Of a DNA stretch of 64,000 nt, positions 7,187 to 60,754 are shown in pieces. The DNA comes from Octopus sinensis (Eukaryota), in the NCBI RefSeq assembly GCF_006345805.1, contig NW_021829832.1, positions 248,001-312,000 on the forward strand, given 5' to 3'. The position numbers and the translations under genes are program-made. The notes under the pieces are model-generated. The model worked only from the letters and a program-made list of their open reading frames with translations, was not told where the DNA came from and searched no databases. Positions within the stretch are counted from its first letter, which is position 1, and every line of letters starts with the position of its first letter.

Positions 7187-9836
<2,650 letters not shown>

Positions 9837-14700: not shown

Positions 14701-16884
14701 TTGATGTGGAACATATTCATCATAACAACGCGTAGACCCGATAGCACAACCCCCCATTGATATGATTGCAGTCGTCGGGAGCAAATATCGCACCGAACGT
14801 TCTTTTACAGGCGAAGGATTGTCGTGAGTGATGTCCATGAGCATGGCATGTGGAAGGGAAGGGACCAAATTGTTGGAAAATGGAAGATAGAATGAACCAA
14901 TGGGGGTCCCTCCGAACTTATAAAGCAGTCTCCCAAGCTCGTGTGGATCCCAAGCATTGTACGCCTCTACAATATTTGCAATTACTTGACCTCGGACGAG
15001 AGAAGTGATTCCTAGAGAATTGGAGAAAAGACTGTCGATCTGTTCAGAGCCCGTGAACAATTCTGCCACAATGTACAAATTTGGATTTATCCGTCTCATC
15101 AAGTCGACCATGTGCTAATTTGTCAAATTTTATAAAATGCCTGAGCCACGTGAAGAGGAGTGCTATGACAGTTGTCAAGTCTGATTCCGTGGAACGTCCG
15201 TGCTACTGTGGACACATAGTCTTCGATTCTGTTCCACAAATAAGGCGAATCGGTTTGACAGGTCCCATATCGAAGTTTCACAGAGTCACCCCAAACAACC
15301 AGTTCTCGTCTGAGATAGACATTCGAGTCTAAATACGCTTTGATTGAAATAATGCAAACCTGGGCCTGCAAAGTCTCTGAGGGGGTCCCAACCCATGACC
15401 CAGCCATTTAGGGATACCACAAATTTGGAATTTTCCGAAAAAATGTTGGCTTCCTCTTCAATTAGAGACATTTTTGAGTTTTGAATGTTCATAAAATAAC
15501 TGTCATTATTAGTCGGAAATAACAACAATCTCATTATCGGGGTTTCTTCGCTTATTTTTGTCCATTTCATTCCGTTCTTGGCAACAAAATTGTAGCGAGC
15601 GTTTGCTACGCAGTTACAAATGGCATGTTCTAAATGATCCCTGACTTGACTGGTCTTTTCCTCGTTTAGTTTCTCCAATTTGGCTCTCAGCCCAGCAAGG
15701 TCGGGATTCTTTCGCAACTCAGTTGGTCCATACAGCATAATGGCCAGGGAAATATTGACTTTGCTTCTGTTGCGACGGAATTCTTGGTCCTGGATTATAT
15801 TTAGTGTCCCTTCGGCATTTTGAGGGACAAAACCTAAAACATCAAATTGGTATAAAAAGGTCACCGTCAGAAATTAAGGTAGAAAACTCGTCGAGTGTTC
15901 TTTCTACGTCACAGCAAAACATTTCATGAATTTTTAGAGGAAGTATAATTTTATTCCTCAAAATATTCTCCAGAATTGCCAAATGAGCTTCTGTTTTTAT
16001 TTCTGGGCCAAGTCCCTCACATTTCCAACTCCCCGCCCCAATTTGCTCATTAAAATGAAAAATAGCTCGATCTAGTAAATACGCAGGTCGAAGATATGGA
16101 CATGTCTTTAAATTATAACTAAATAAGTTGAAAAGACAACAAGGAACCAGCTTTCTGGGTGCTCTGCAATCCAAGGAGAACACACAGAGGCATGATTTAG
16201 AACAATGTCACTTATAGTAAGAATATTCCACTCTTGGCGAATAAATTCGACCAAATTAGCAAGTTCTTGGAAGTTTTTGCAATCAAGGGTTGAATTGAGA
16301 ACAAAATAGTCACGAATGCTGTAACTCGAGTTGGAAACACCGAGTTGTTGCACAGGAGTTAGATGAATCATGTTGAATCCACACATCTTTGCGATTTGCA
16401 ATCTGAAAAGCTATAAAATTGCAAATATTTACCTAGATAACCAATCCTTGATTGGTCCGAGGGATTTTACGATATATGTCTGGGAAGATACCTCCTCGGG
16501 CCTGATCCGGATGTTTGACTGAGGTCCCACCAAAAGCTCAGGGTCCACCACAAAACAGCCCTCCGTTAGCAATTTCGAGCTATAAATAGTCAAGAAAATA
16601 TATAACCTGGAAAGGTCAGAAATCTTAAAGTTAAAGGCTCCGGGAAGACGTAAAAAAATAGAATAAGTATTATCTTTTCGTGGGACTTTGTAATATTTAT
16701 TTCGAGTAAATCCTTCAATTTTTTCAGTCATTGGCATATTTGTTTCGACTTTGAGTTCTTTTAATGCAAGACTTTGGCCTAAATGCAAGCGAAGTACAGT
16801 TCCTTTGGAAATTCTGTAGTGCTTGGTCCTACAATCCCCGTCACTGTGCACAATCAGGTCGTATACTTCACAACCAAGACTCAT
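11785..16884 (-). CDS. AGL: Glycogen debranching enzyme
   Basis: [104 protein letters not shown] and C-terminal QAWSMA; more than 20 micro-introns. Confidence 0.97.
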
Positions 16885-19001: not shown

Positions 19002-21821
19002 ATGTCCCATTGGTTAGTCGTTGTATCATAATAAACAAGTTACTATAACGATCAATGGTCAAAAGCACAATCAGAACTCAGAGACACCTTGCATGACGAG
19101 ACGAATTTCAAAAAACATAACGTCATTTTTTATGTTGTTTTATTCGTTTAGACGCACGAAAGTCTGTTTGGCAGCATAGCTTCTCTGTACATAAAATATA
19201 TCCAAATTTACACAAAATTAAATGAATGTCACGATCAGATAGTTCATCCCCAGAAACGAATACTACTCAAGTTATAATCTCATTTAAAGTCAAGACACGT
19301 GATTGAAGGGACAATAGGAAGAATCCTTGACTTGAAAAATGATCTTGTAAGACTGAACATGTCCGAATTCCATTTCATGGAAGACATTTTGTGCGACATG
19401 AAATTGACACCTGTTACGTTGATAAAAGTCATTTTTAGGATCAAATTGAGCTGCCGATTCCGAAATATTTTGTGAGGGAACGAAGAGTCGAATTAGACAG
19501 CAGAAATAGAATTTTGGATAAAATTCTCTCCAAAATTGGTCCTCAAAAAATTCCGGTTGTTATTTATTTTTTATGCTCAGGATGAATTCGAAATTGAACT
19601 AAGCATTGAAGACGCTGTAAAAATAATTCAGACCAACGAACGAGCCCGCCAAGCTAGAATTCGCGCTAAATTCATGATCGAAATAAAAAAACAAGAAAGA
19701 CAAGAAGCCTTTGCCAGAAAGACTACAAATAAAATATTTTCACTAAATCAGGCGGGCTCGATTATTCAGAAAGTACAATATTCATGTCTAATTAGATTTG
19801 GAGGGGATACATAACTCGCAAAAAAGTGATCGAAAGTCAAAATAAAGAGGAGATCTTTCTTGGAATGGTAATATTTATAACTCTACAATTTCAGGTCAAA
19901 ACCGAGCTTGAAGACAAGGAACAAAAAAGGGCTTTGGAAGTCGAGGAAATTCGAAGAACTGTTCAGGATGCCAATGAACAGCAATATCAAGAAGCTCTGA
20001 TTAAAATAAAGGACATTTTGGTAAATACTGAAGGTTCAGAACTCAAAGAAAGCATGCAAGACAGCATTCGGCAGTGGTTTATTGAAGTCAGGTAAGTAGT
20101 TGATGACATTTCTAGAGATGCTGTTGGGAGATTTCCCGACTATCCGTCGGTCGAGGAAGGAGGGTCGTTAAAAATCTTTACGACCAACTCTCCCGATGAA
20201 GTTGAAGAACAACTGAATAATAAAGTTGGTTTTAAAATTCATATTTTAGCCAGAAAAAGGAAAAGCCGAGAAAAAACCAAAAGAAAATAAAAAAGAAAAG
20301 GACAAAAAACAAAAAGTGAATTACTCGAACTAAGTTTGATAGAAAAACGAAGATTCTTTTGAAATGACAGATTCTAAATTTTTGAACACGTTAAAAGAAA
20401 CTTCTCTAGAATACGACAGTGAGAACTAATTTTTATATAACGCAGATGTTTGGCTTGACAAAAACGAGGATTACAACATCAATCAGCAATATGACATTGA
20501 AATGGTCAAAAAATCAAAATGGAAAGAAATGGAGGAAGAAATTCGACTTCAGGTGGATGAACTCATGCGAGAAGAACTTTCGAATTTAAAAGAGGTTTGC
20601 CATTTAAAAATTATTCAGGCCGTCGACAGGCAAAGAGCTGGTAAGAAAAAAAACAAAAAACCCAAAAAACGAAAAAAAGGTGGAAAAAAAGGTCGTAAAG
20701 GAAAGGATTTGACCGCCAATCGGTTCCAAATCTGTAAGTATTTTTAGAGAAATTTCTGATCTTTACGAAGAGCTCATCACCCAGGGAATAATAAAGAAGC
20801 CCTTAAACTGTCGAATCAGTGACTACATTGGTGATTTCAACTATTTGGGAATGACTTTGAGAAATTTCAATTTCGAGCCAATGCCCTCACTAAGCGACGT
20901 TCGTAGAATAGTAACAGAATACGCGATTTTGTCAATGGGTAAATTCATATCGATATAGGAAGGATCTGCCTCAATTAGAGCTTCCGCCCCTTTGATAAGA
21001 TCAATGATGTTGGCTGGTCCAAAAGGAACAGGAAAAAAAATGTTGGTTCATGCAATTTGCAACGAACTTGGAGCCAATTTATTTGACCTGACTGCCAGCA
21101 ACATTGCAGGAAAATACCAGGGAAAAAATGGATTGAAAATGTTGATGCATTTGATTGACAAAGTGGGAAGGGCAATGCAGCCATCAATCATTTTTATTGA
21201 CGAATGTGAAAAAATGTTCAAGAAAAAAATACCAAAAACTGATACTGTTCATTGAATGCTTAATTCGACATAGACTGAACCGAAACGACTCAAAAAAGAT
21301 ATGATCAAGTTTTTTAAAGGAATCAAAGGGGCTGATCGCGTAATGATCATAGGGACGTCTAGTTGTCCGTGGGATGGCGAAATCAAAGCATTGACAGGAT
21401 TTTATCAAAAGTTGATTTTGATTCCGAGACCTGATTTCCCGTCGAGACAAAGTAGCGTTTAGAACTGAATTTTAGTGATTTGGGAAAATAGTATTAAAAA
21501 ACTGAACGGATCAGTGACTCGGCATTTTGATTTGTGTTTACTTGGAAAAATAAGCGACGGATTTTCTCCAAAAAGTATTGTCAAGGCTTGTGAGCAAGTA
21601 TTAATAACACATATAATTATCGAGGTATTGGTGGAGAGTAGAGTGGCCCAATTGCAAAGAAAGCCTCTTAAAGCCAATGAGTTTATCGAACCACTGTCTA
21701 CAAGTGAGCCAATATATAAGGAGGAAGAGGACATGTTCAAGGTTGGGGGTCATTAATCATTCAGGAATGGCACAAGAAAACACCAATTGGAAAGAGAAGA
21801 AATGCTCTTGAAAAAATCTAG
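19002..21821 (+). CDS. IQCA1: IQ and AAA domain protein 1 (DRC11, motile cilia)
   Basis: [16 protein letters not shown] motif, LAGPKGTGK Walker [10 protein letters not shown] and C-terminal [12 protein letters not shown]. Confidence 0.92.
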
Positions 21822-27669: not shown

Positions 27670-28470
27670 CTAGGTTAATTGTTTGGGATGAATGTACGAT
27701 GGCTCATAAAGGCGCATTCAAGCAGTTGACCGAACATATAGAGATATCAAGAATTGTAGCGACCATTTGTTTGGGGGAGCATTAGTTGTATTGGCAGGTG
27801 ATTTTAGACAGACGCTGCCAATTATTCAAAGAGGAACGCCTGCGGATGAATTGAATGCCTGCCTCAAATCGTCATATTTGTGGACACACGTGAAAAAGGT
27901 AAGCTTAGATGTAAATGTACATGCACATTTACAAGGCGTTAATAGCATATTCCCACAAATCCCTCTAGATATTGGAAATGGGGCAATCACTTCAGAAATG
28001 CACGACCAGAAAATTAGGCTACCGGAAGAATTATGTATTTTCGTAGAAACAGCAGAAGAATTATTGAATGCCGTCTATTCCGAACTATCTGAACACTACG
28101 TGAATTTCGACTGGCTGCGTGAACGAGCTATATTAGCTCCACTTAATGATGAGGTACTTAATATAAATTTAGATTTATTAATGAAAATCCCTGGCAGAGA
28201 AAGAATATATAAATCGGTCGACGTTATTATGGACCATGAAGGGCCTGCGATAGATTTAAGAGACTACAATTTCCGCTGAAGATAAGTTTTGCTATGACAA
28301 TAAACAAGGCCCAGGGACAGTCTTTAAAGGTAGTAGGCTTATTTTTAGAGAACGAGTGCTTTTCACATGGCCAGCTGTATGTGGGGTGCTCAAGGGTAGG
28401 TAGAAGAGAAATTTATTTATATTTGCCAAGGATGGACGGACTGCAAACATCGTTTATCCACAGGCCTTAG
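27670..28470 (+). pseudogene. Helitron PIF1-type helicase C-terminal fragment, internally deleted
   Basis: [47 protein letters not shown] and [13 protein letters not shown], with stops. Confidence 0.88.
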
Positions 28471-32092: not shown

Positions 32093-33900
32093 ATGAAATC
32101 TTTACAAAACTGGCCCAAGATGCTAATTCTGAAGTCATGGGACTCACTATTCATACCTCCAATGGAATTATTACTATTGGAAACTTATATATTCCCACAC
32201 CGGGGTCATGCACCAAGGGATTTACTGTTGATCTGTCTAGCCTTGATAATGTGGGCAACTTACTGCTTTCCGGAGATTTTAATGCCAAAAACCCTCTGTG
32301 GTTTCAGAAACAACCGGCGGATGCGAGAGGAAACCTCATTATTTTCCAATTCAAAAGACTGTCCATTATGAACGATCCAAAGAAAAATACAAGAACGCCA
32401 TATAACGGAAAAAAATCGACCACATCCCCAGACTTGTTCCCCGAAATTAGCACCAATTATTTTTTGGACGGTAAACTATGACCTACAGAGTGATCACAAT
32501 CCAATCATCATACGGATAAACTGTTCTCCAATGACCCGAGAGAAACATGATTCCTACTACGATTACAATAATGCAAAATGGTCGGCTTATAAGAAATACG
32601 TCGATACAAAACTTTCCACATTCTATCCGGGACCCAATTCCCTCAATAGGGCAGCCCAATACTTCAATAAAGTGATACTGAGGGAAGGAAATTATATGTC
32701 CATAAACGTTTCCGGAAAATATCAAAAAGAAAACAAAACCCAGAAATTACCAAACTGATAAAGGAAAGAAACTTCCTCAAACGCAAAAAATTTCTAACCA
32801 AAAAAACAACTAAGAGAATAAGGACACTGAATATGGCGATCCGGAGCAAGGTAGACAATCAAGCAAGAAGCTGGGGAGGACATCATCAGCTATGAAAAAA
32901 AATAGTCCACTGTCTAGGATGTAAAAGATGCTACGTCAATTTCGGGACTACGATGCACAGACAGGTGTGGAACCTGGTGACTCACTGAATTTAAACAAAT
33001 TTATGAAGCACTGTGTCTCAATCAGCTACAAACCATATCAGAAACACAATAGGCCACCAAATTCTGGGCCCTGTAGCTATCACGGCATTAACGGCCATCT
33101 ACAGCCAGACAGTAAATGAAAACAGTATTCCAAATATATGGAAACAATCCAAAATCCATCCAATCTCAAAACCTGGGAAGGAGAGGAACGAACCAGGATC
33201 ATACAGGCCAATATCTCTATTATCTGCCCCCTCGAGAATTCTTAAAAAGTTGATTCTTGGCCGTATTCGAAATTTTATTCTTCAACATGGCTTCAAGAAA
33301 GGACTGTCAACTTCTTCTCATTTACTGTTCCTGAAACAAATTATTACAAAAGGGTTGGAAAGGAAACCTGAACAGGAAAAAACGATTGTATGCTCAATTG
33401 ATATCCACAAGGCTTTGTCGATAAATGTGACCATGGAAGAGAAATCAATTCCTCAAAATAAAACTCTAAAGATACTAGAGATCACCTTTGACACCTTTCT
33501 AACCTTTACTCCCCATACGGAAAACGTGTTGACGAAATGCAATAAGAAACTCAACTTTCTTAAAGCATTTCTTGGAAACTTGGAAGACGCCAAAAGAACT
33601 TACGGATTAGAGTCTCTATACACTTAATACATTAAACCGACAATTGGTTACGGATGTACAGTATGGGGAAGCAATCTAGGATATACAAATGTCAAAAAAA
33701 TCGACAATATTTAAATGGAGATTGTGAACCTCCTAGCAAATATCACGGGGAACAAAATTCAACCAAAGGGAATAAAAGAAATCGTGAAAGAAAACAGTGG
33801 AGACCTCAGGAAAAAAGTCCATGTTCGGGATCCCCGATCTCTTAGACAATGCGCTGTAGAACAAAAAGAAAAGATGCGAAGGAAGGTTTCTAAAAGAGGC
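32093..33900 (+). mobile_element. Degenerate LINE (APE endonuclease plus RT, jockey/I-like), RT core deleted
   Basis: LLLSGDFNAKNPLW, WKQSKIHPISKPGK..SYRPISLLS, QHGFKKG and IDIHKAL joined directly to IPQNKTLK; no YADD motif. Confidence 0.85.
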
Positions 33901-38293: not shown

Positions 38294-39076
38294 CTATCGG
38301 TATGGTCCTTCAGTAGATTGATAGATTTTTCTTGGATTTTTTCGATTTTTTAGCTGGTTCGTTGCCGTCAGGTTACAGCCCCAAGCAGCACATGCATAGC
38401 CTATTGTTGGCTCGATATACTGCTTGTAAAGGGTCTCTACCCCTGGCGGATAAGTTCTCCCACAGTTCCAAAGGAAGGCTTTTACAAAATTGATCTTCTT
38501 TATACAGGTTGACACGATCGATTCTACGTGAGGTGAAAAACAGAGGAAAGTGTCAAACGTTACTCCCAATATCTTCTGTGTTTTGTTTTGTGGTATTGGG
38601 ACTCCATTCAGCGTGACTTCAATAGTTTTCGTCCCCATCTTCCTATTTTTCGTGAATAGAGTGACTGCTGACTTTTCAGAACATGCATGTAGTCTGTTTT
38701 CATATAGCCATCCATATAAGTCGTCCAGTATTCTTTGTAGTCTTTCCTTCGCGTATTCGACATTTACATCCCTGGATGCGACAACTATGTCATCGGCATA
38801 GGAGAGTAGTATGTCATTATTATCCATAGGAACCGGGAGATCATTCAGAAACAAGTTGAAGAGGGTCGGGGATAAAGGAGAACCCTGGGGTACACCATTG
38901 GACAATAATCGTGATCTTGAACTCTCGTTCCCGACGCACACGTTCCCGACGCGACCACGACGTCCGCTCAAAAAATTCGCTATCCATAGCTTCATAGGTG
39001 TACAAATTTGTGTACCAAATATCTTTTGAATTAGGATCTTCCTTGGGACGGAGTCAAACGCTTTGCCAATATCCAA
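38294..39076 (-). mobile_element. 5'-truncated LINE reverse transcriptase, same family as 32093-33900
   Basis: DIGKAFD, GVPQGSPLSPTLFN, YADD and ILGVTFD. Confidence 0.9.
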
Positions 39077-44520: not shown

Positions 44521-44920
44521 AAGAAACTAAAAATTGCAAACAATTTTTAAACAAAGTTATCAAAATGTTTTAGAACAATTTATTTCAGCCACTCAAATTA
44601 TGTTCCGCGATCCAATTTTTTAGACATAAAATAGTCTCCCAGTTACTTTGCAGTTGACTACGGTTACTTTGCATGATATTTTTCCCGATTGTTAATGACT
44701 AACCCACAAGAACACAAATAACAAAAATAATAAATCATATCATTGCTTTCCGTGCCACTACTAGATTATTTATAGCACTTTTATTTTATAAATTGTGGAA
44801 CTGGTTCGCCACTGAGGACATAATTTATCGCATCAATTAAAATATTCAAAATAAAATTTATTTAATTATTTTTTTATTAAAAATTAAATTTTTAAATTTA
44901 TTGTTGATGTTTGTGATATA

Positions 44921-45868
44921 ATGAACAGAAGAAAAGTCGGCGTCTCTGCAGTCAAAAGCAACGATTTATTAAAAGTAATTTAAAAATAAAATTTCTGAAA
45001 AAATTCCAAGAAAAAAGCACGGAATTCCACGAGAATGAACTCCAGGAGGTAAATTCCACGGAATTAACCAAAAGCTCACAAAACAGACCGAAAAGTTCAA
45101 AGAAAACCTCGAAATTTACGCGAAAAAACACGGAAACGAAATCAAAAAGAATCCCCAACTGAGAAATGAATTCCAAAAAATGTGTGCCTCAATCGGCGTC
45201 GATCCTCTCGCATGTTTCTCAGCCAATAAAATACAAAATTATAGCCTCCAAGGGTTTTTGGTCAGAGATTTTGGGTGTTGGGGACTTTTACTATGAACTG
45301 GCGGTACAAATCATTGAAATCTGCCTGGCAACTCAGAAATTTAATGGGGGTTTGTATTTTTAGATATTTGAAGGAATTTTGAGTCTTGGTGAACTGATAA
45401 ACAAACTCCACGTGAACAGGGGACGACATCAGGATCAAATAAATGAGTTTATATTAAATTTAAAAAATTATTAATTTTAAAAATATATAACTTATAGAAA
45501 TGATGTTCGAATTGCAATTTCAAAAATTTCTGTTCTGGGAAATGGTTTCTCTCTGATTGAGTCAAAGGGCGTGACATTTGTCCGGTCTGTTTGTGTCGAG
45601 TTGTCAAATGACCACAATTTGGTACTTTCCCAAGCAAATGTTGATTATTTGAACTCCCGATTGCCTAGGAACGCGGATATTTGACAAAATCTGATTTGCT
45701 TATTTCAACCGGGTGGAATGAAGAGAGAGTGCTCAATATATTGGTTTATATTTTGTGTTCTGGAATTGAAAGAATTCATTCGTAGAAGGTGGAATGGTGT
45801 GGATCGATGAACAAGGGGATGAGGTCCAATATTGGTTTCCTGGCTTGACTAGACTCAAAAATGATTAA
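44921..45868 (+). CDS. SNF8: ESCRT-II subunit SNF8/VPS22
   Basis: [43 protein letters not shown] and YWFPGL. Confidence 0.95.
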
Positions 45869-57028: not shown

Positions 57029-57717
57029 TCACTGTGTATGATCAGATTGTATTTGAAATCCAAAAAGTCTAAAAATCAAGCCACAAAAAAACGTGGGGAC
57101 ATATGTGGTCTCCACTTTGGGAGGTTTCCTGTCAGTATAAGTAAGAAAGATCATATGAGGAAGTCCCGTCCCAAAATAAGCCCCGTCGACCTTCCGGTGC
57201 TTCTCCGACTTGGGAGTATAAATATCCTCACAATTAGGACAGTATAATTTGACAAAACAAGTCCCCACCACGTCGGACAGTCCAATGGGGAGCAAATTCT
57301 GTTGTCCGCAGTAATATCGAGGACACACCCCAAACACCCCCGTCTGCCATTTCTCCACCAAAAAACGTGAAATCACCAGGGTACCATCTTGGCCATTCCT
57401 CGGGTGGTCAACACAAATCGGGCGTGCATTTGGCCGTACAAATCTTCGGCGAAGGACTCGAGAGAGGAGTCGTCCATCATGTCGAGGCATGAAAAGTCAT
57501 CTTTTGGTAGGGATTGGGGGGTACCGTCGTAGTTGAGGATTATTTTGAGGGCGTTGTGGTAGTTGGGGAGTTGGGTTAGTCCTATGCTGTTGAAGCGGTC
57601 GCCTAAGTAGTCTGCGTCGATCTGGGGTTGTGGAATTATGAAAACCTCACAAAAATACTCGTTTCCTGATTGAGTGCAAAATGATTTTATCCACGACACT
57701 TGATCGGAACTTGTCAT
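57029..57717 (-). CDS. CSNK2B: Casein kinase II beta subunit
   Basis: VSWIKSFC..GNEYFCE, LYGQMHARFVLT, FGVCPRYYC, VKLYCPNCEDIY and VDGAYFGTGLPH. Confidence 0.97.
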
Positions 57718-59580: not shown

Positions 59581-60754
59581 CTAGAAATCATCATCAACAA
59601 TAGCAGTAACAAATTGTTTGTATCGACTCATAACAGAAGCTGCAAAATACTCCAAATGAATAATAGGTTTGTTTCCCTTGTTGAGTCTACACTCCACAGA
59701 AGCAGCCAATACAGCCAACTGGCATATGAGTTGGTCATCACAGTACTTCTCAAACACACACATCATCTCCTACCAATCACCCCCCCACACAACCTTAATA
59801 ATAACACTGGGAGGTATCAAACGTGCCAAAAGCTCGTAAAAACGTTTTCTAACTTCAACAAGACTGATAATACGACTAATTAACAAACCATTTAACATTT
59901 TGTTGTTTTATTATCATTTCTGCAGTAGCGTGGAGATATCTCTGCCACTCCCCTCGATCAACAACATCAGCCTTCCTTTCCATCAACAAAAATAAAACAA
60001 ACTCATTCAAAGCTTCACAAGCCAAAAGTGCAAGCCGCAAATTTCCTTGTGCCATTTTTGCAATTTCAAAAATACACGGCCGACGGGAAATTTGTTCAGA
60101 ATCACAAACTGTATTCAAAATCCTAACAACCTACCAAATCAATCCACAAATTACGTCGTCATCGGAAGGACAGGGAACCCTCAGAGGAAGAGTCCGAGAC
60201 CTCAATGGGGAAATTATATTGCAGAGAGTCTCCGCACAGAGAATCAGTCTACAAGCAGAAGAGTACTTTTCCATTGTCCGACGGAGAGCATTCTGAGCTG
60301 AACGAGACAGTTGGTCCACTTGGTTTAAGACGATGACTATAAAAGTCAGGAGAGGAAAAATGCCTTTGAACTTTACAGAGCCCTTCCGAATGGCCTGTGT
60401 CTGGGCGACGGATTTAATGACGTCCTGCACGACGAGACGGTCGTTGAATTTGCCGACTTGGCTGGGAGTCAGTTCCAGGTGATAGGCAGAGCCAATGGAG
60501 TGGAATTCTATTTTCTTTTCTGACGGTGTTTCAATGTGATGGACTTCGTTTTTTACTACTGAACTGCCAGGGCCGTAAAGTTCTCGTAAAATGGCTGCAA
60601 TTCGAGTTGACTTTCCACTTCCGCTTGGGCCGTGGATTAGTAGATTGGGGAAATCGTGAGATTGGACTAATTGTTTGAGAAATGAGGCTTGTTTTTTATT
60701 GTAGTCCAGTTCGTCTAAGGTTGATGGACGGTATTTGTCAATCCAAAGAGCCAT
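59581..60754 (-). CDS. RFC3: Replication factor C subunit 3
   Basis: MALWIDKYRP, LLIHGPSGSGKST, AQNALRRTMEKY, ISPLRSR and KPIIHLEYF. Confidence 0.96.

Follow-up and report, generated by a model that had tools for sequence, protein, structure and literature searches.

A candidate GT-TG micro-intron at an ancient intron position of SNF8 in a dicyemid-like contig of the Octopus sinensis assembly

Few signals in eukaryotic genes vary as little as the AG that closes U2-type introns. To our knowledge, introns with a GT donor are documented to depart from it only at rare TG sites of mammals, which serve as alternatives and depend on a nearby AG. In the window analysed here (the whole stretch of 64,000 nt), a gene for the ESCRT-II subunit SNF8 appears to carry a 23-nt first intron that begins with GT and ends with TG. 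This raises the question of whether the TG could be a working 3' splice site, or whether the gene or its assembled sequence is damaged. The window is part of a 959-kb contig (VCDQ01004456.1) of the Octopus sinensis assembly GCA_006345805.1, which was made from PacBio and Hi-C data. Coordinates below are those of the window; addition of 248000 gives the position in the public record.

The gene starts at 44921 on the plus strand and has eight exons that encode a product of 244 amino acids. This product was matched by Pfam EAP30 (PF04157) with E=1.3e-51, residues 6-226 covering profile positions 1-219 of 219. A protein search returned 1,464 homologues, the best named of which were animal SNF8/VPS22 proteins at approximately 50% identity; identity to Argonauta SNF8 is 47%. 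The full-length profile match, the orthologue-level similarity and the shared gene structure identify the predicted gene as SNF8/VPS22. Introns 2 to 7 are all GT-AG and lie at 45049-45074 (26 nt, phase 0), 45214-45244 (31 nt, phase 1), 45350-45373 (24 nt, phase 1), 45447-45497 (51 nt, phase 2), 45640-45668 (29 nt, phase 0) and 45744-45772 (29 nt, phase 0). The last exon extends from 45773 to 45868, with a TAA stop at 45866-45868.

Exon 1 (44921-44974) consists of ATG and 17 further codons and was defined by alignment with 19 homologues and by an SNF8 HMM. It is followed by the candidate intron 1, GTAATTTAAAAATAAAATTTCTG (44975-44997, 23 nt, phase 0), which was delimited by spliced alignment and by the conserved intron position. 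The GT is at 44975-76 and the TG is at 44996-97, where AG would be expected; the critical base is the T at 44996 (record position 292996). The original prediction had described 18 codons followed by 23 nt with an in-frame TAA. This is exact, and the exon-1 frame read into the 23 nt meets three stops in all (TAA at 44981, TAA at 44987 and TGA at 44996). Exon 2 (44998-45048, 17 residues, placed by homologue alignment) opens with AAA AAA TTC CAA GAA AAA AGC ACG, or KKFQEKST. The proposed junction LLK|KKFQEKST is colinear with vertebrate LAE|AKYKERGT, a correspondence that held when a toad sequence (P0042) was included in the alignment. Residues 1-40 align without gaps to the 19 homologues, with M1, R3, G7 and A10 invariant.

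We also confirmed what had been said about the AGs downstream. The first (45009-45010, 13 nt beyond the TG) and the second (45016-45017, 20 nt beyond it) give introns of 36 and 43 nt and shift the frame, while the first in-frame AG (45032-45033) demands an intron of 59 nt and the loss of 12 conserved residues. All four GT dinucleotides in exon 1 are in phase 0, so other GT-AG pairs cannot restore the SNF8 frame. An alternative upstream first exon was rejected: upstream of exon 2, its frame reaches a stop at 44914 without passing an ATG, and exon 1 clearly encodes the N-terminus of SNF8. A U12-type intron, a known home of non-GT-AG termini, was also rejected, as GTAATTTAAAAATAAAATTTCTG has neither the 5' [AG]TATCCTT motif nor the TCCTTAAC branch box.

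A protein-to-genome spliced aligner was written for this analysis and applied to SNF8 loci from five animals. The candidate intron follows K18 in phase 0, at alignment column 19. Intron 1 of SNF8 was found at the identical column and phase in Oscarella (a sponge), Clytia (a cnidarian), Asterias (an echinoderm) and Argopecten (a mollusc, the scallop). Introns 2 to 7 lie at columns and phases (36,0), (82,1), (117,1), (144,2), (194,0) and (221,0) and are likewise shared with the compared animals. Counting the candidate, all seven positions and phases coincide with those of Oscarella, and six or seven coincide with those of Helobdella, Asterias, Clytia and Argopecten. Exon 2 starts with SKFAEKGTE in Oscarella, QRFAAKGTE in Clytia and AKYKDKG in Asterias, compared with KKFQEKSTE here. 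In these three animals, whose loci had both boundaries resolved, intron 1 is GT-AG. By its position and phase, the 23-nt segment is thus the orthologue of an ancient phase-0 spliceosomal intron of SNF8, and the shared position means that its 3' edge must sit at 44997|44998. In the leech Helobdella robusta (locus L003, 568-771) the first SNF8 intron is at column 23 in phase 1, 13 nt downstream, an apparent intron displacement.

To score the possible 3' edges, we trained an HMM on 116 SNF8 proteins of animals; all of them are gap-free over residues 8-40. Removal of 23 nt with the TG end gave 335.1 bits, compared with 330.1 bits for 20 nt (TT end), 328.6 bits for 26 nt (AA end), 320.5 bits for the 36-nt AG intron with one extra A and 305.0 bits for the 59-nt AG intron. 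The 20- and 26-nt versions were discarded as 5-6.5 bits worse, and 20 nt is also shorter than any intron in the census described below. Exon 1 contributes 21 bits: 200 shuffles lowered the real 335.1 bits to a mean of 317.1 (SD 1.9, z ~9.5). Residues 19-30 contribute approximately 15 bits (shuffled mean 319.7, SD 2.9, z ~5.3). The sequence on either side of the 23 nt is therefore coding, and the two sides are adjacent in the protein. With TG allowed as an acceptor, the spliced aligner chose exactly 44975-44997 with 19 of 19 homologues; the gain was +33 (13-34 across the 19 homologues) and always above that of TT or AA ends. The general Pfam EAP30 model did not separate the isoforms (177.7 bits for the 36-nt isoform, 175.9 bits for the TG isoform). 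The original prediction of a GT-TG micro-intron in SNF8 thus stands as far as an intron with these boundaries is concerned, on position, phase and homology, while the TG remains a candidate RNA acceptor.

To see what introns in this DNA normally look like, we carried out a census of the window. Homologues were taken from protein searches and PDB alignments (a search by sequence for a PDB relative of UTP25 found none), and the aligner was restricted to GT-AG. A gene finder based on codon usage and dynamic programming over open reading frames proved too weak: SNF8 escaped it, CK2beta and stomatin came out as one gene, and in-frame introns were passed over. It was replaced by the spliced aligner; the introns of SCAMP were read by hand. 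Besides the SNF8 candidate, we found 81 distinct GT-AG introns in nine genes of the window: 22 in glycogen debranching enzyme, 15 in DRC11, 14 in KAP3, 11 in UTP25, 6 in SNF8, 5 in stomatin, 3 each in CK2beta and RFC3, and 2 in SCAMP. All but one, of 51 nt, measure 22-37 nt, with a mode of 24 nt; six of the 81 are 23 nt long. Donors are, by falling frequency, GTT, GTA, GTG and GTC, with GTA in 19 of 64. The acceptors of the first 64 introns are TAG (35), AAG (13), CAG (12) and GAG (4). In every census intron an A is found 5-12 nt before the 3' end. In 52% of the 81 there is an A at -8, followed by a T-rich stretch from -7 to -3. The enriched A at -8, which is position 17 from the 5' end in 24-nt introns, is likely the branch adenosine, held at a near-fixed distance; it agrees with the weak A signal reported for introns of Dicyema japonicum.

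Measured against this census, the SNF8 candidate has a GTA donor, a length at the short end of the range and a 3' context at the 78th percentile by PWM. Its nearest upstream A is 6 nt from the 3' end, and there is an A at both -7 and -8, followed by TTTC. The 3' context of the AG at 45010 is at the 30th percentile, and an intron of 59 nt would be longer than the longest of the 81 (51 nt). Among the canonical features of a U2-type intron, the GT, the length, the internal signals and the frame and position are all present in intron 1; the AG at the 3' end is not. As a separate observation, a length divisible by three is found in 28 of the first 64 introns of the census (e.g. 57622-57645, 14967-14990 and 8164-8187). 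Thirteen of these 28 contain no in-frame stop, and their retention would silently add 8-9 residues. Stopless introns of this kind are reported to be depleted among ciliate micro-introns, which differ in this from the introns seen here.

The original prediction had also called for a census of non-AG acceptors, genome-wide; we ran it within the window. AG plus one of the 15 other dinucleotides at a time was allowed in all census genes except SCAMP. In well-conserved regions this brought no improvement. In poorly conserved regions single events gained no more than approximately 10 units, and the gains did not agree from one homologue to the next. TG accounted for the two highest gains from a single event, +33 in SNF8 and +18 in CK2beta; the next was approximately +10. 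For none of the 81 other introns did a non-AG ending align clearly better, and all of them are GT-AG. In 26 of the 81 there is a TG in the 3' part of the intron that, according to homology, is skipped. With an AG close by, a TG would thus be no more than a weak site, because all 81 introns end in AG and 26 of them pass over a TG. An in-frame 24-nt stretch of RFC3 (60345-60368, minus strand, encoding FKGIFPLL; gene 59608-60754) that is missing from human RFC3 was considered as a third odd intron. It lies just before the Walker B strand and would end GT..CT or TT..TG, neither a canonical intron, and it was set aside as a probable real loop insertion.

The second outlier lies in the CK2beta gene (57050-57717, minus strand). 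Homologue alignment points to GTACCCTGGTGATTTCACGTTTTTTG (57384-57359, minus strand), a GT..TG candidate of 26 nt that ends in TTTTTTG. A canonical alternative of 32 nt, GT..GAG, uses an AG 6 nt further on (57354-57353, minus strand). The TG reading, RGMAKM|VEKWQTGVFGVCP, is colinear residue for residue with human RGIAQMLEKYQQGDFGYCP, with no indel, while the AG reading deletes two residues. Pfam CK_II_beta scored the TG isoform at 215.8 bits (residues 8-189 against profile 1-182) and the AG isoform at 205.2 bits, a gap of 10.6 bits. The 3' context is at the 77th percentile of the census for the TG and at the 9th for the AG. The nearest A is 9 nt from the TG end and 15 nt from the AG end, the latter outside the 5-12 nt of the census. 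This candidate makes genuine use of TG more plausible, without proving it. The arrangement resembles tandem (NAGNAG-like) acceptors in that a TG is paired with an in-frame AG 6 nt downstream and two isoforms could result; it is unlike them in that one member of the pair is a TG. SNF8 departs further from such acceptors, as its downstream AGs at 45010 and 45017 are out of frame.

We infer that the T at 44996 is genuine and that splicing takes place at the TG. We put the probability that SNF8 intron 1 is removed there, in at least part of the transcripts, at about one half, judging from the genomic sequence. According to this explanation the local copy of an ancient intron carries a T where the A of the acceptor should be, and in at least some transcripts the ordinary U2-type spliceosome would still remove it by cutting at the TG. 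Its GT donor, its A-rich middle, in which a candidate branch A lies 6-8 nt before the 3' end, and its short T-rich stretch ahead of the junction resemble those of normal local introns, and the terminal G of the acceptor is retained. In introns of 22-37 nt the 3' cut is probably set mainly by the distance from the branch point, and TG could then substitute for AG. Splicing to the AGs 13 or 20 nt downstream would yield frameshifted SNF8 mRNAs. Among the points that count against splicing at the TG, the AG 13 nt downstream is in a usable context, and CK2beta has a legitimate in-frame AG alternative. A wider proposal, which we put forward tentatively, is that in a few percent of their 22-37-nt introns (2 of ~83 here) dicyemid-type spliceosomes may cut productively, and perhaps constitutively, at a TG. 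The cut would be set by the distance from the branch adenosine rather than by AG, and annotations limited to GT-AG could be missing several hundred such introns.

The T could also be real but unused, the result of a recent AG-to-TG mutation that left a null or weak SNF8 allele. This allele would be masked by an intact one in a diploid, largely clonal parasite, or else the gene would be in early decay, and in its transcripts the intron would stay in place or end at the AG at 45010, 45017 or 45033. We regard this as the most serious rival, though an unlikely one. Human AG-to-TG mutants behave in this way, with neighbouring AGs activated (PMC2374985). Dicyemids are heterozygous and largely clonal (PMC6736024), and D. 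japonicum has a heterozygosity of 1.24% (PMC6736024), which allows a damaged allele to end up in an assembly. A recently mutated canonical site would be just as likely to show the favourable 3' context of this TG, and CK2beta could be a similar mutation, rescued by its in-frame AG 6 nt downstream. CK2beta is highly conserved, however, and its AG isoform loses the 10.6 bits given above. The remainder of SNF8 is intact (seven exons, no stop, conserved residues kept), which argues against a defective allele. Furthermore, both independent hits among the ~83 acceptors are A-to-T changes at -2, the single change known to leave an acceptor some activity, and none was found at other splice-site bases. 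A repeated A-to-T change at -2 is unexpected for random damage but is expected if TG is tolerated.

An error in the base call or consensus is improbable to a greater degree. In this case the true sequence would be TTTCAG, and an A at 44996 would indeed produce a typical 23-nt GTA...CAG intron. CAG accounts for 12 of 64 census acceptors, a 23-nt CAG intron exists in SCAMP, and the assembly is PacBio-based, with the contig a probable contaminant in it. PacBio consensus errors are mostly homopolymer indels, and a substitution of T for A next to a C is not typical of them. Against such an error there is also the quality of the surrounding sequence: ~4,500 codons (~13.7 kb) in eight genes of the window contain no frameshift or premature stop relative to homologues. 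A second error of the same kind would be needed to account for the TG in CK2beta.

A different assembly error, which we consider very unlikely, would make intron 1 a 36-nt GT-AG intron (44975-45010) and place a one-base undercall in the A run at 45011-45016. The protein would then read ...DLLK|KKSTEF... and be four residues shorter, and the transcripts would lack AAAAAATTCCAAG. The length is within the census range, the context of the AG at 45010 is acceptable, a homopolymer undercall is a typical PacBio error, and the general EAP30 model does not penalise this product. The animal SNF8 HMM, in contrast, lowers it by 14.6 bits, and none of the 116 homologues has a gap at that point. The residues that would be dropped, KKFQ, correspond to SKFA, QRFA and AKYK, with which exon 2 opens in other animals. 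The required assembly error is without another example in the window.

The chance that the 59-nt GT-AG intron (44975-45033) is the normal one, with a product that lacks 12 residues of the N-terminal helix, is slighter still. It is the sole GT-AG pair that keeps the frame, and the AG-restricted aligner makes such a link with a few homologues. This product nevertheless scores 30 bits lower in the SNF8 HMM, the 12 codons that it discards are significantly homologous, its intron exceeds every one in the census, and the 3' edge of the intron would depart from the conserved position. It is barely credible that SNF8 mRNA stays unspliced and that the ribosome, by a -1 or +2 shift upstream of the TAA at 44981, translates the 23 nt: the exon-2 frame is open back to 44917, but A TTA AAA G does not fit the slippery pattern X XXY YYZ, eight extra residues (SNLKIKFL) would be inserted where 116 homologues have no gap, and the segment is intron-like and sits exactly at a conserved intron position. 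A programmed ribosomal frameshift site was accordingly rejected, with no slippery heptamer and a product that is not colinear with the homologues.

To place splicing at the TG among known systems, we compared the site with the GT-TG introns of human genes. Among non-AG acceptors, only TG has been shown to function in human U2-type introns with a GT donor (PMC2374985); GNAS and TSPYL2 are examples (PMC4176328). These human acceptors are preceded by a pyrimidine (-3), followed by a purine (+1) and lie within 28 nt of an AG (PMC2374985). The SNF8 site shares with this class (Szafranski et al. 2007, PMC2374985) the GT, the TG, a C at -3 and an A at +1. The nearby AG is also present, at +13 and +20 nt in SNF8 and at 6 nt in CK2beta. 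In its sequence features the SNF8 site therefore belongs with the human GT-TG class, and use of its TG is a candidate case. In human genes, however, a TG acceptor is found only where a nearby AG can be used instead, and constitutive use of TG was judged impossible; when human AGs were mutated to TG, neighbouring AGs were activated and not the TG (PMC2374985). In SNF8 the nearby AGs shift the frame, so that the TG would be the productive, and possibly the main, site. The introns also differ in size, 23 nt here against hundreds or thousands of nt in human genes, and the SNF8 intron is predicted from genomic sequence.

The nearer comparison is with the micro-introns of dicyemids (Ogino 2010; Lu 2019, PMC6736024; Zverkov 2019, PMC6543705; PMC13644364). 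The SNF8 candidate is like them in its length of 23 nt (the published median is 27 nt), its minimal GTA 5' signal, the A-rich patch before its 3' end and its ancestral position. It is unlike them in its TG end, as AG is the only 3' signal reported in D. japonicum. The published splice-site logos of D. japonicum have AG at the 3' end, and the annotations behind them could only hold canonical sites (PMC13644364, PMC6736024). In the published dicyemid work, genes were modelled with AUGUSTUS and introns mapped with TopHat (PMC6736024), and TG introns of dicyemids would therefore have gone unseen with tools limited to canonical junctions.

The consequences depend on which explanation is correct. 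By default, AUGUSTUS and TopHat handle essentially only canonical junctions; if TG is used, gene sets of dicyemids, and perhaps of myxozoans, may lack or mis-model genes as a result of canonical-only predictors and read mappers. Use of TG for a conserved and otherwise intact ESCRT-II subunit would imply that the requirement for AG can relax as introns approach their physical minimum. The animal concerned has some of the shortest introns known, and the case would bear on how the site of the second catalytic step is chosen. It would be a concrete instance of relaxed 3' splice-site definition in animal micro-introns, with a TG that carries gene function. Should the T prove to be a damaged allele or an error, the locus would still flag a large dicyemid-like contig in the RefSeq octopus assembly and offer a convenient locus for tests.

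The contig itself looks like a dicyemid-like contaminant within the Octopus sinensis assembly, because its genes are not cephalopod-like (~50% identity to molluscan orthologues) and all its defined introns are 22-51 nt. Among animals, introns this short have been reported only for dicyemids and myxozoans (PMC13644364). D. japonicum lives in O. sinensis, and its genome has 36.7% GC, many LINEs and a mean intron length of 38 bp (PMC6736024). Searches for proteins or transcripts of the same species came up empty: a protein search with full-length SNF8 returned nothing above 52% identity, the N-terminal 68 amino acids of SNF8 had no matches, and a chimeric UTP25+DRC11 query found distant UTP25 only. 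Exact look-ups of window ORFs returned the source contig itself or nothing, and an exact DNA scan of metagenome contigs was empty.

Several other features of the contig were observed along the way. The window contains two cilium genes, KAP3 (7214-9754) and DRC11/IQCA1 (19218-21741). A further one lies just past its end, in a neighbouring segment (L002 1-7100, corresponding to ~63650-70750), where ORFs with DM10 domains resemble EFHC1/Rib72; this EFHC1-like sequence aligned only in fragments and added no junctions to the census. A TBP-like ORF in the same segment was judged by eye. Also by eye, the ORFs at 27767-28279 (plus strand), 32137-33627 (plus strand) and 38294-39076 (minus strand) were read as a PIF1/Helitron-type helicase and as fragments of non-LTR retrotransposon endonuclease/reverse transcriptase. 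The retrotransposon-like ORFs fit the LINE-rich genome of D. japonicum.
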